NCBI RefSeq assembly: GCF_048593235.1
Contig: NC_133617.1
Span: 73,926,937-73,990,936, forward strand
DNA from: Sminthopsis crassicaudata
Taxonomy: Eukaryota
Direction of reading: 5' to 3'
DNA length: 64,000 nt
This document shows positions 40,141 through 56,306 of the stretch, piece by piece. Made by a program: the position numbers and the translations under genes. Positions within the stretch are counted from its first letter, which is position 1; each line of letters begins with the position of its first letter. Under the pieces are notes generated by a model. The model was not told where the DNA came from. It saw only the letters and a program-made list of their open reading frames with translations, and searched no databases.

Positions 40141-40508
40141 AAACTCACACGCGAGAGCCAAACGAACCCTGCCAGGCCGGGACCTCGTCCCCAGAAGGAC
40201 CCGTAACTGAAGGATGCATGCAAAGTCTCGCATTTTTGGTTACAGGATGGGAAGGGGCGGCTGAATAGCGCGAGGAAGAACTGGAGAGGTGGAAGAGGAA
40301 TCCACAGGATGAAGGGGGCCGGCGGGCGGGGACATTCGTGTCGCCACGGCCCGTGGGGTTAGGCCACAGCCGGGGGGAGCGGGCGGCAGGCGCGTCCCCC
40401 TCAGGGTTCCATCCCCGGACGTTCTCCCCACCCCGCTCTGGCGCGCCCTCCGCTCCGCAGCCAGAGGCCCTCTCACCCCCAAGGCCTCGGGGCACTGGCT
40501 GGACTCAC

Positions 40509-40640
40509 CCTTGGTTCCGGGGCGGCGCAGGAGGCGTAGACTTGGAGGCGGCTCGGCGGCAGGAGACGGTACTGCCGAACCCCAGCGCATCCGATACCCC
40601 TGCGGAGGTCGCCCTCCCCGGCCGGAAGTACTGCCCCGCT
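40509..40640 (-). other. Probable non-coding first exon of gene A (5' end approximate)
   Basis: Minus-strand donor AAGG|GTGAGT (actcac at 40503-40508) inside the CpG island. Confidence 0.6.
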
Positions 40641-40699
40641 ACCCCGCCCTCGGGAGCCGCCCAATCCGGGCCCTCTACTGGCCTCGGGCCGCTCTATCC

Positions 40700-40899
40700 T
40701 TTGGAGGAGTCACGGTCTCGGTGGCTCCCCGCGCTTGGAGCTCTTTCTCCCGGAGCAGGGGGTGGGGTAAGGCCGAGCGCCTTCCCCTGCTCGTCTTCGA
40801 GCCAGGACAAAGCGAGGCCCTACTAGGAGGACGGCATAGTTGCTTCCAAGCCAGTCTTGGGTTACGGAGGTTCCGCGCGTGTAGGCCCGCAGGCAGTGG
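40700..40899 (+). other. Probable non-coding first exon of gene B (5' end approximate)
   Basis: Plus-strand donor TGG|GTGAGT at 40900-40905 in the CpG island. Confidence 0.55.
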
Positions 40900-41474
40900 G
40901 TGAGTCTGGGCGGGCGGGGCAGGTCAAGGAGCGCCTCTGCCCACGGGGTCTCCGGGCCCTGCTCGCAGGGAGCTCCGGACTGATTGGGGTGGGGGGAGGG
41001 GGAGGAGAAAGTCTTAGGCCGGGGAGATGCTCCTTTGGGCCGAGTATTGTGAGACCTGAACACCGGGCACGGTGTGGCGGGGGTGGTAGTGGAGGGGTAG
41101 GGAGTGGGGATGAGCGAGGCTTTAGCTCTGGAGCATCTGGGAAAGCTTCGTGGAGGCTGCTCTCCCCCTGTCCGCTGTGCCTCATTCTCAGCCCTGCATT
41201 TCCCTGCCCCCCTTAGAATTCCGATCCTCCTCTGGACTTGACTGGAGCACCGCCATTCTGTAAGGGGCCTTTCCGATTCCTTCCCTTCGGCCGCCGGGGT
41301 ATACCTGTGTATGTACGTGTTGTCTCCCCCATAAAATGTGAGCTCCGTTTGCGTTCCCAGCTCCTAACACCTTACCTGGCATATAGTAGGTGCTTAATAA
41401 ATGCTTTCTGAGTGACTGTGTGGATCTTTGTTACAGATGTTCTTAAAAGCTTTTTCTTTTTTTTTTAATTTGGG

Positions 41475-41920
41475 TTTACTGGCTAGATTTCTTAATTAAG
41501 GACCGAGCCTTAAACAAAGACCACTCTGATTCTCATTGGGTTTGGGTCCTAATTGAGCAATCATTTCTTCTTTGACCAGAAACCCTTGGGTCTTCCTTTC
41601 CCAGATGTATTTAGTTATTAAGGTTGTTGTTTTTTTTTTTTTGACTAGGATAAAGAGGGAATTCTTTGCCTCTATTGCTACCTAGCTTTAGTTACTGAAT
41701 GGGTGCGGCCTCAGTCAAACTGAGACCTGAAGCTCTCTCTCACTGCGTCCAGGGCCGGGTCCAGTGGTCCTGATCTGTTGGTGACCTTTGGCCCCGATGG
41801 CTCTGGAGGGGACAGTGAGGCAGTGATCTTGCCCAGCCTCCCTCACTGACATCCCACTCACATATCATGGCAGCACCTCCCCATGCGGTGGTTCTGTTCC
41901 AGAAGGAAGGCCAGACAGCC
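41475..41920 (+). mobile_element. RTE-associated SINE
   Basis: ctcagtcaaactgagacc...gatggctctggagg. Confidence 0.65.
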
Positions 41921-42019
41921 GCCGCCTGTCTCGAGGCTCTCCCCTCATTAGTTCTGCGGTAGATGCTGCCAGAATGCCAGTAGTGGGCCAAAGCCCTAAA
42001 TGATCTAAACCTTCCTGCT

Positions 42020-42530
42020 TTCAAAAGCCTTCAGTGGCTTCCCAATATCTATAAAATCCCATCTCCTCAGCCTGGGTCTAAAGACACTCCACCATCTAGT
42101 TCCAGCTCAGGTATTCAGCCCCATTTCATATCATCCCCCCATTATGTACTTGATTACTCAAAATTCGCTGGCCATTCCCTGAATGGGCAGTCAGAATCTC
42201 CATGCGGAATGCTGGAATGCTCTCCCTTCCCACCCTGGCACTCTGGATCCTTATTTTCCTTCAAGACTTATTTCAGGGACCTTTTCTTCCTTGTTTATCC
42301 ATTTATCAGTCCATCATTTATTAAGTGCCTAGTGGTGGCTTGTCATTGTAATAAGCCAGCCCAGCTGTTAATGTTCTTTTCTTTTTCACATTGCCTTCTG
42401 TCTTATATTTATTTTTCTCCACACCTCCCCAGAAAGTAAGTTCCATGAGGGCAGAGACTTATTTTTTGTCTTTGTAATCCCAGTGCCTTGCATATTGTTT
42501 GCTCTTAATGCTTGTTAAATTAAGTTGGAC
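42020..42530 (+). mobile_element. L2 3' region
   Basis: ccttcagtggcttccc...gagggcagagact...cccagtgcc. Confidence 0.7.
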
Positions 42531-53335: not shown

Positions 53336-53743
53336 TAGGTGAGGCATTTCTATTCCTTTTTCCTAGGTTTCAGGCATAGTCTGTACAGAACTGGAAATGG
53401 ACAAGCTTCCTTAAATCTTTCTGAATTTAAATCTTTTCTTTGTCTCTAGAGGTGGTCATTTTTCATGTTAATCTTAGAAGGAAAAATAAGTTTGCATTAT
53501 ATTCCCTTGATTCTCACGTTGCCAATTCTTTCTTGTTCTACCAGTCCTCTAGGAAGCAGGTCTGAGAACACCTGTGAGCAGGTGCTGTAGTTTTCTTGTG
53601 GATTTTTCTAGTCTCATTTCTCTGGACGTTATTCTTCTTTTCACTGCCATACTCTTTATAGATCTAAGGGTTGGATCTAGGTTTAGGACAGCTTTATGAA
53701 CTTGGTACAAACCAGAAATCTTTATTTTCTTTTCCACAGGTAG

Positions 53744-53860
53744 GATTTCCAATAAAAAACACCTGGTGTGATTTCTTGGCTGGAGTGAGGGGAAGAATCA
53801 TGGATTTAAGGCAATTCAGGAACTTAAGGAAAAGGAGATCCTGAGGAAAGACTCACTCAG
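53744..53860 (+). pseudogene. Gene B KRAB-B exon, disabled
   Basis: GFPI-[frameshift]-PGVISWLE*GEESWI*...QELKEKEILRKD; TGA 53786-53788 and TAA 53807-53809 in the homologous frame; donor CAG|GTGAGC. Confidence 0.85.
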
Positions 53861-53869
53861 GTGAGCAAT

Positions 53870-54130
53870 GGAAAACCCCTAGACAAATTATGTACTTGGA
53901 TTTCAGCAGTGCATTTGATAAAATTTTTTATTCTGTCTTTGTGGACTTTGTAAAGAAAGCTAGACTAGAAAAGAGTACTGTTAGGGTATTCAAAGCTGTT
54001 TGAATGACCAGGTTAATGATTAGCTTTGAAGCAGGTTTCTGCTGGAGTGATTTAGAGATTAGTCTTTAGTCCTGGGCTCTTTCATATTTTTATCATGGAC
54101 TTAAATAAAGATATATCAGTAAGATTGATA
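53870..54130 (+). mobile_element. L3/CR1 RT fragment
   Basis: tacttggatttcagcagtgcatttgataa (YLDFS.AFD). Confidence 0.65.
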
Positions 54131-54661
54131 GGATAACAAGAAAAAATATTTTTTGTATCTTATTTGATAGAGTGATGTTCTAAGTATCTCCACAAATCAG
54201 GCCTATGTGTGATTTTAGTCTAATAATATGAATCACACAATCATATAGTTGGAAGGAACCCTAGAGGCCATTTAGTTTAACCCATACCTATATAGGAATC
54301 CTAAACAAATTGTCAGCTAGGCTTAGCTCTAGCAAAGGGAATCAGTGACCTCCTGATACATCAATTTTCATTTTTTGGATAGGTATGATCATTAGGAAGT
54401 TTTTCCTGATAACTAATCCTAAATCTGGTAAATAAGCTGCAAAGATTTGCTAACCATAGGACAGGACTACGAGGCCAAAAACATATCAAGGAAATCAGTT
54501 CCTTGATTCCAAATGGAATGGTGTGATGACCCATTCCTGAATCCCTTTTTCAGTTAACATCCTGTTAGCTTGATCTTGTCCATAGATGCTTTTAGCACTT
54601 TGATAGTAACCAACTGTGACAACTAGTTTTATCATAGCAAGTTAATACAACTGCATTTTGT

Positions 54662-54902
54662 ATTCATTGTTTCAGACTGAAACCAGGACTAAGAATAAGG
54701 AATTGTCTCCAAAACAGGAAATTTCTGATGAGATGGGGTTCTACTGCTCAATATTAGAAAGATCTACAAGAGATACTTCCCAAAGACCAAAATTTGAGAA
54801 GCCAGTGAACATGAAAGCATATCAAAGGAAAACTATTGGTCTTCTGCAGGGAAGAGAATGGGAAAATTACTTTATTAGAAGAGAGTTTTCAGATCAGTGA
54901 CA
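54662..54902 (+). pseudogene. Gene B proximal spacer, disabled (now probably 5'UTR)
   Basis: DSLFQTETRTKNKE aligns with gene [15 protein letters not shown], but is preceded by GT instead of AG. There is a 1-nt deletion near 54797 and an in-frame TAG at 54876-54878. Confidence 0.85.
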
Positions 54903-56306
54903 ATGATCCACCACATACCCTACACAAGGGTGACAGGTCAGGAACATAATGAATTTGTGAGAAGCCTTGGTCTGGACTCAGACCCTGTTGGATATCTCAG
55001 AGTTTCTTCAGGAGTGACATTGCAGGAGTATGATAAAATAAATCAGATATTCAAACCAAATCCAGACCCAGTTAAATGCCAGAAAGACCTTATGGTAGAG
55101 AACTCCTGTAAATCTGGTGGATATCAGAAAGCATTCAGGCAAAGCTCCACTCTCAGTGAACTACAGGGAATTCATACTGTAGAGGATACCTGTCAGAAGT
55201 CTACAACCACTGATCATCAGAGAATTCACTCTACAGAGAAACCCTATGAATGCTGTGAATGTGGTAAACACTATGCCAGAAAGTCTTTGCTTAATAGACA
55301 TAAACAAATTCATACTGGAGAAAACCTTTATGAATGTACTGAATGTGGGAAAACCTTCAGTCAAAGCTACAACCTCATTAGACATCAGAGAATTCACACA
55401 GGAGAGAAACCTTATGAGTGTAACGAATGTGAGAAAGCCTTCAGTGAGAGTTCAAGACTCATTAAACACCAGAGAATTCACACAGGAGAAAAACCTTATG
55501 AATGTAAAGAATGTGGGAAAACCTTTAATGATCCCTCAAACTTTATTCAACACCAGAGAGTTCATACTGGAGAGAAACCCTATGCATGTAATGCATGTGG
55601 GAAAGCTTTTAGTGATGCCTCAAATCTTATTCAACATCAAAAAATTCACACTGGAGAGAAACCCTATGAGTGCAATGAATGTGAGAAAGCCTTCAGTGAG
55701 AGTTCAAGGCTTATTAAACACCAGAGAATTCATACAGGAGAAAAACCCTATAAATGTAATGAATGTGGGAAAACGTTCAATGATCCGTCAAACTTTATTC
55801 AGCATCAGAGAGTTCATACTGGAGAGAAACCCTATGCATGTAATACATGTGGAAAAACCTTTAGTGATGCCTCAAATCTTATTCAACATCAAAAAATTCA
55901 CACTGGAGAGAAACCCTATGAATGTGGTGAATGCGGAAAAGCTTTCATTCTGAATTCATCCCTCATCAGACACCAGAGAGTTCACACTGGAGAAAAACCA
56001 TATAGATGTAATGAATGTGGGAAAGCTTTCAGTCAGGGTTCAAGCCTTAATAAACATCAAAGAATACATACAGGTGAAAGACCCTACAAATGTAATGAAT
56101 GCGGGAAAACTTTCATCCAGAGTTCAGGCCTCATTCGCCACCAGAGAAGTCACACAGGAGAAAAACCATATGAATGTAATGAATGTGGGAAATCCTTCAG
56201 CCAGAATTCAGTCCTCATTAGACATCAGCGAATTCATGCGGCAAAAAACAAGGAGTCCACAAAATGGAATGGTTTACCTTGGGAGGCAAAGTACAGGGGG
56301 GAATAG
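54903..56306 (+). CDS. Gene B: KRAB-less C2H2 zinc-finger ORF, 467 aa, 12 fingers
   Basis: Open ORF from acaATG (A at -3); distal spacer plus 12 canonical fingers; stop TAG 56304-56306. Confidence 0.8.

Follow-up and report, generated by a model that had tools for sequence, protein, structure and literature searches.

A zinc-finger gene of the dunnart Sminthopsis crassicaudata with decayed KRAB exons and a finger array that is probably still under selection

When a KRAB zinc-finger gene loses its KRAB domain, does the remainder survive as a gene in its own right, or is it a pseudogene that has yet to finish decaying? The KRAB domain recruits TRIM28/KAP1 for silencing, and C2H2 arrays give DNA specificity. 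KRAB zinc-finger genes turn over fast, and KRAB loss is one of their known fates, usually leading to full decay. The question is raised by 64,000 nucleotides (nt) of DNA from the dunnart Sminthopsis crassicaudata (assembly GCF_048593235.1, contig NC_133617.1, positions 73,926,937 to 73,990,936 of the forward strand), here called the window, whose numbering is used throughout. It contains gene A, on the minus strand, which encodes a complete KRAB zinc-finger protein, and gene B, on the plus strand, in which disabled KRAB exons precede an open reading frame (ORF) for a spacer and zinc fingers. The reading favored here, with a probability of about 0.6, is that gene B is a selected gene for a KRAB-less, TRIM28-independent, sequence-specific DNA-binding protein.

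The lesions of gene B are read from a frame-aware alignment to the exons of gene A, which places the homologue of the KRAB-A exon at 51907-52032, that of the KRAB-B exon at 53744-53860, and that of the final exon from about 54646. The KRAB-A remnant (51907..52032, plus strand) retains 69% nucleotide identity to its gene A counterpart, and a tblastn search with the gene A protein of Antechinus matches it at 55% over 42 amino acids (aa; E=7e-11) with an internal stop. It carries a 1-nt deletion near 51917 and a CAA-to-TAG change at 51975, while its splice sites seem intact. The KRAB-B remnant, within an exon at 53740..53860 (plus strand), contains 1-nt insertions near 53760, 53808, and 53854, a TGA at 53786, and a TAA at about 53807. 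The ancestral acceptor of the final exon, tttcag, has become tttgta at about 54660, and the former spacer, now the leader of the final exon (54676..54902, plus strand), shows a 1-nt deletion at 54794 and a TAG at 54876. A counterpart of the gene A start-codon exon was sought in gene B intron 1 and not found; it may be lost, diverged, or hidden in an assembly gap.

Gene B thus holds five frameshifts, four to five stops, and one splice lesion in about 484 nt, against none in the next 1404 nt. A previous interpretation of this DNA, the sequence-only reading, counted at least eight disabling lesions in the same 484 nt; the present count of 10-11 is slightly higher. That reading also described the 1404 nt from the ATG at 54903 as free of lesions, with this ATG only 25 nt after the last stop, and the alignment bears out both points.

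The ORF (54903..56306, plus strand) is open from a GTG at 54897 or from the ATG at 54903 to the stop at 56306, in a frame that is the ancestral one past the 54794 deletion. Counted from the ATG, it encodes 467 aa, of which the first 114 form a spacer lacking any Pfam domain; the rest holds 12 C2H2 fingers in tandem, joined by conserved TGEKP linkers, all in one 3' exon. Zinc ligands and linkers are in place in 12 of 12 fingers, with 48 of 48 ligands intact, and the array matches the Pfam models zf-C2H2 (E=4.5e-87) and zf-H2C2_2 (E=9e-114). A gene call with exactly this 467-aa product is recorded for assembly GCA_048593235.1. The alternative frame at +1 of the array is also open across the fingers, for 235 aa (55246-55953, plus strand).

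Gene B is transcribed from the CpG island that separates it from gene A, and its transcript is spliced. Transcription, which the sequence-only reading had left to RNA data, is evident in 16 sequencing runs flagged as possible RNA, each of which contains 85-94% of the sampled words of 54600-56400, the last exon. Splicing is visible in RNA contigs that came from one run of four (X1), on 53300-55230, with coverage ending at 54730. The contigs lead from exon 1 (to 40899) to the KRAB-B remnant exon (53740-53860) and on to an acceptor at 54676. An exact 122-nt contig covers this second exon, where the RNA word depth is about 260 (53739/40-53860) against 5-7 in the flanking introns, and the joint 53860/54676 has GT..AG borders and a depth of 263. 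Exon 1 is non-coding (40756..40899, plus strand; donor GT at 40900), its 5' limit being the end of the RNA contig. It was located through a 143-nt loose end of a contig upstream of 53739, the last 30 letters of which map uniquely to 40869-40898. Canonical sites accordingly define introns at 40900-53739 and 53861-54675. The single contig that contains exon 1 joins it directly to exon 2, skipping the KRAB-A remnant; the depth at this junction is 137 versus 256 for exon 2, and contig branching leaves room for further upstream exons.

The acceptor at 54676 lies 14 nt inside the ancestral final exon, and its use is what loss of the ancestral acceptor would predict. Because the contigs reproduce the KRAB-B remnant and the 53860/54676 junction letter for letter, the three frameshifts and two stops in KRAB-B are not assembly errors, and assembly error is refuted as the source of the lesions in that exon. 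Within intron 1 lies an unfilled assembly gap of N (50912..51039), which precedes the KRAB-A remnant by 868 nt and is touched by no reading frame or exon homology. The splice from exon 1 (40.9 kb) to exon 2 (53.74 kb) crosses it, so the sequences on its two sides are part of a single transcription unit and are ordered and oriented as in the assembly.

The anatomy, the lesions, and the spliced transcript are matters of observation, as is the bias toward synonymous differences described below; the timing of KRAB loss is inferred. Four lines of evidence favor a protein-coding, KRAB-less gene: the placement of the lesions, a molecular clock, an internal duplication, and the lack of a gene-conversion donor. 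If lesions were spread uniformly over 1888 nt, the chance of finding all of them in the first 484 nt would be 1e-3 for the five frameshifts only and 5e-6 for frameshifts and stops together. The clock was calibrated on a 10.7 kb non-exonic alignment of dunnart and Antechinus, in which substitutions amount to 7.4% and gap openings to 1.2% per site; of the gaps, 84% have a length that is not a multiple of three. Frameshifting indels have therefore accumulated at about 0.5% per site per lineage since the two split. At that rate, five frameshifts in 484 nt would correspond to KRAB decay over 2.1 split times, with a 95% interval of 0.67-4.8. A neutral ORF of 1401 nt would keep its ATG and remain clear of stops and frameshifts with a probability of 1e-3 at 0.67 split times, 4e-5 at one, and 4e-9 at two, the last being the joint value near the best estimate of the decay time.

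The array itself contains a tandem duplication of three fingers (55413..55916, plus strand; 2 x 252 nt), in which fingers 3-5 (55413-55664) are repeated as fingers 6-8 (55665-55916). The two blocks differ at 17 positions, 13 synonymous and 4 non-synonymous, giving a synonymous divergence (dS) of 0.35, a non-synonymous divergence (dN) of 0.02, and a ratio of the two (omega) of 0.057 (P=3e-7). All four replacements are close to cysteines, the three recognition helices are identical, and the zinc ligands are unchanged. The dS between the blocks is about five times that of gene A between the two species (0.065), which places the duplication before the estimated loss of KRAB. One split time of neutrality should have added about 15 replacements to the difference between the duplicates; the probability of observing four or fewer under it is 7e-4, rising to 0.03 at 0.67 split times. 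Among the scored proteins there is no sign of a recent gene-conversion donor, the best match reaching 66% identity, and with no match above that value conversion from a close paralogue is an unlikely cause of the open ORF. The finger frame has thus been under purifying selection at the protein level, and probably also after KRAB was lost, to judge from these sequence comparisons.

Purifying selection on the finger frame makes a KRAB-less, TRIM28-independent binder the most likely product. In this history, the ancestor of gene B was a KRAB zinc-finger gene and a paralogue of gene A, and its promoter, splicing, and finger array have outlasted the decay of KRAB. The gene B mRNA starts in the CpG island at about 40756; exon 1 is joined to the KRAB-B remnant, which no longer codes, and this in turn to the acceptor at 54676. 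The sole long frame in this mRNA is the 467-aa spacer and 12-finger ORF from the ATG at 54903, and its product would be a sequence-specific DNA binder lacking KRAB and independent of TRIM28. Recruitment of TRIM28/KAP1 by this product is expected to be negative, as no KRAB is encoded. The proposal of the sequence-only reading that gene B was re-purposed as a DNA binder without a silencing domain gains from the spliced transcript, from lesions that avoid the ORF, and from the omega of the duplicates; translation, DNA binding itself, and any effect on chromatin are inferred.

The serious rival takes gene B for a unitary pseudogene that is still transcribed, or for a long non-coding RNA. Its ORF would then be open through youth or luck, the selection signal would predate the loss of KRAB, and the island would perhaps be kept for gene A. 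The main argument for such a non-coding fate is the leader, which measures at least 492 nt before the ATG at 54903 and contains five upstream ATGs, three of them in strong context. The first, at 53800 in exon 2, has a strong context and opens 14 codons; the other four lie in the final-exon leader, at 54728 (weak context, 9 codons), 54733 (strong context, 55 codons), 54811, and 54858 (strong context, 6 codons), all on the plus strand. The stop of the 55-codon upstream ORF occupies 54898-54900, leaving 2 nt to the main ATG, which itself has an A at -3. Together with the other upstream ATGs, this ORF looks like part of a decaying leader. Ribosomes would have to get past five upstream ATGs, by leaky scanning or reinitiation, to translate the 467-aa frame, whose output would probably be low or conditional.

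Several further points weigh on the same side. The exact protein is absent from a collection of 15 billion proteins, and a word-indexed search with the spacer only in a cluster database of 5.8 billion returned zero matches. A HMMER scan with the spacer over 1.84 billion representatives found only paralogues with different helices (P0122, P0124, which has a SCAN-like N-terminus, and the gene A orthologue), and a search with the whole protein gave matches only at the paralogue level, at 66% identity or less. The passages on ZNF252 in PMC2865497 describe a human look-alike of the same anatomy that is transcribed and is on the path to full decay, its array being broken in chimpanzee. The contigs come from a single RNA run, and the ORF itself lies outside their coverage. 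The case for selection after KRAB loss depends on a molecular clock, and its interval is wide; at the lower end, 0.67 split times, the open ORF and the non-synonymous deficit have probabilities of about 1e-3 and 0.03. These are small, yet the locus was chosen for its unusual look, a weak point of the case alongside the wide interval.

What the pseudogene explanation leaves poorly accounted for is the confinement of every lesion to the first 484 nt, the low omega of the duplicated block, the full set of zinc ligands, and the very low joint probability of an open neutral ORF at about two split times. On balance it is possible but rather unlikely, and a selected KRAB-less DNA-binding protein remains the preferred reading.

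The two readings that come next give gene B a function directed at gene A or its kind, and they depend on what gene A is and on how the two genes are arranged. Gene A is intact, with all listed exons in phase, as the sequence-only reading had described it. On the minus strand it comprises a start-codon exon (33126..33216; ATG at 33158, MAAELLPAWSQ, ending in phase 0), a KRAB-A exon of 127 nt (20886..21012; Pfam KRAB, E=9e-24), an intact and in-phase KRAB-B exon of 114 nt (20369..20482), and a final exon (17809..19079) with the spacer and nine fingers recognized by the scan. Its orthologue in Antechinus flavipes (P0121, "zinc finger protein OZF-like") has a spacer that is 93% identical, and the final exon evolves with an omega of 0.19 between the two species, the array showing seven synonymous and no non-synonymous differences. 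The Antechinus gene range begins exactly at the start-codon ATG of gene A, a region 96% identical between the species. That identity extends over about 500 nt around the start-codon exon (33290-32790, minus strand), well above the neutral level and beyond the 91-nt exon.

RefSeq isoform X1 of the Antechinus gene starts instead at an ATG in the intron just upstream of KRAB-A (MFMNSTY...; 24136-24270 of the compared Antechinus locus, L002). The dunnart equivalent (21148-21013, minus strand) has a stop and a frame change, and the conserved MAAELLPAWSQ exon fits the KRAB-A phase, so this start looks like an annotation artefact. The gene table of the dunnart assembly draws a 1240-aa minus-strand gene across the whole locus (44903-66306), so that gene B would lie within an intron; the model has probably fused gene A and a zinc-finger gene farther upstream.

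Genes A and B do lie head to head across one CpG island, in agreement with the sequence-only reading. The island (40000..41000) is the only one between them, with a G+C content of 0.62-0.69 and a ratio of observed to expected CpG of 0.74, and gene B exon 1 lies within it. The Antechinus locus compared reaches window position 42542 and so includes the island and this exon; the island core is 97-100% identical between the species, against about 92.6% for non-coding DNA. A block at 40885-40984 (about 1600-1700 of L002), which takes in the exon 1 donor and the intron 1 sequence up to its 85th nt, matches Antechinus at 100% and may be a promoter-proximal regulatory element. A putative first exon of gene A lies at 40512..40650 (minus strand), with a conserved donor AGG/GTGAGT at 40511/12 and an alternative donor at 40150. 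Gene A would accordingly start near 40650, about 100 bp from the start of gene B, with CCGGAAGT (about 40622) and a CCAAT (about 40663) between them, and the island would be a putative bidirectional promoter. Sharing of the promoter by the two genes is plausible.

In the part of the island that precedes the known gene B exon 1, 40151-40755, RNA runs contain 24-82% of the words. Run X21 has a share of 0.82 of this A-side stretch and 0.01 of the gene B last exon, whereas run X10 has 0.87 of gene B and 0.00 of 40151-40755. These shares indicate that a second transcript begins in the island and that gene B exon 1 reaches little beyond 40756 on its upstream side. They also suggest that the two sides can be active separately and are not obligatorily co-active. 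For the co-expression of A and B that the sequence-only reading supposed, X21 and X10 are samples that point the other way.

Could gene B then act as a co-expressed competitor or shield at the targets of gene A, without recruiting TRIM28, from one bidirectional promoter? The conserved island and the transcription on its A side fit such a role, and KRAB-less isoforms that keep the DNA-binding part without recruiting TRIM28 are documented, for example POGK iso2 (PMC11887677). Some recognition helices are also alike, such as SQGSSLNK in B and SQGSSLIR in A, plus one further xx-type pair. A tabulation of contact residues -1/2/3/6 for the nine recognized A fingers and the 12 B fingers nevertheless finds no pair, among 12 x 9, with all four residues identical. 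The matches at three of four positions are not collinear and owe much to the near-universal serine at position 2. The finger numbers differ, 12 against nine, and the finger exons are 75-77% identical in DNA, as befits old paralogues. An overlapping DNA specificity is thus absent from the sequence prediction, and competition for the same sites is not predicted. The similarity of helices noted in the sequence-only reading holds for a few of them and fails at the level of the four contacts, and its proposed repressor/anti-repressor pair finds no support in these contacts, in the age of the paralogues, or in the separate activity of the two island sides. Such a role for gene B is improbable, and the idea of antagonism is without support in the sequence.

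Equally doubtful is a broader version, in which gene B would be a dedicated anti-silencer that shields sites from gene A or other KRAB proteins and is switched on under stress. Its leader would then be gated in the manner of ATF4, the upstream ATG at 53800 being permissive and the 55-codon frame inhibitory.

The weakest explanation, that the KRAB lesions are assembly or sequencing errors in an ordinary intact KRAB zinc-finger gene, can point to the nearby N gap and to the KRAB-A remnant and two spacer lesions outside RNA contig coverage, and it is barely credible given that exact contigs exclude it for the KRAB-B exon, that the transcript uses the new acceptor expected after loss of the old one and goes from exon 1 straight to exon 2 without the KRAB-A remnant, that no start-codon exon was found in the search of gene B, and that ten independent errors in 484 nt of a clean chromosome-level assembly are implausible.

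No coding-like ORF was seen downstream of gene B at 56.3-66.3 kb, and an Rfam scan of 38-58 kb gave zero matches. Copies of a short interspersed nuclear element (SINE), 77-88% alike, occur at 52450-52610, 45020-45193, 50683-50843, and 25581-25741, one of them carrying a run of 25 T; another repeat family occurs at 52610-52957, 49387-49740, and 20238-19872. A second CpG island occupies 2000-4000, with a G+C content of 0.55-0.66 and an observed-to-expected CpG ratio of about 0.6.

Set beside known systems, gene B is a derivative of KRAB zinc-finger proteins (KZFPs) of an already described kind. With canonical KZFPs such as gene A and its orthologue P0121, it shares common ancestry, a five-exon plan, a CpG-island promoter, and a TGEKP-linked C2H2 array. 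It differs from them in having no usable KRAB-A, the TRIM28-binding part: the exon has a deletion and a TAG, is skipped in the exon-1 contig, and lies upstream of the ORF. Lacking an in-frame KRAB-A joined to its fingers, gene B is not a KZFP by membership. It opens no new kind of mechanism. KRAB loss in such genes is a known evolutionary route.

KRAB-less products are also made by splicing. Such isoforms are known for ZNF71 (PMC8038441), and POGK iso2 keeps its DNA motif and fails in TRIM28 recruitment and repression (PMC11887677). Like the predicted product of gene B, they have a DNA-binding part without the domain that recruits TRIM28. They are, however, splice forms of one gene with an identical DNA-binding domain, whereas gene B is a gene of its own, an old paralogue whose contact residues differ and whose KRAB is permanently lost. 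Closer in kind is ZNF16, described in passages of PMC2865497 as a conserved, expressed KRAB-less member of a KRAB-ZNF paralogue group, in which, as in gene B, an N-terminal region without a known domain precedes the fingers. Those passages on ZNF16 mention no remnant exons, whereas both KRAB remnants of gene B are readable and one is spliced into the mRNA.

The nearest likeness is to human ZNF252, in the KRAB-ZNF cluster at 8q24.3, as described in passages of the same paper (PMC2865497). In both genes, KRAB-A is out of frame and KRAB-B contains a stop, so that recognizable, disabled KRAB exons lie upstream of a last-exon ORF. Both have one or more KRAB-derived 5' untranslated exons in a spliced transcript driven by a CpG island, and in both the last exon contains the whole of the longest ORF, which codes for spacer and fingers only. 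According to those passages, the loss in ZNF252 is recent, macaque, dog, and opossum being intact, and the gene is decaying, with the chimpanzee array broken. In gene B, by contrast, the decay of KRAB looks old, the array is free of lesions, and the deficit of non-synonymous differences is strong. Gene B therefore offers a clean marsupial case, in which the remnants are legible, one of them is now an untranslated exon, and conservation of the array has seemingly continued well beyond the loss of KRAB. Should orthologues bear this out, it would provide a dated example of a finger array outliving its repressor domain and a natural reagent for what a KRAB-less array does at its targets.

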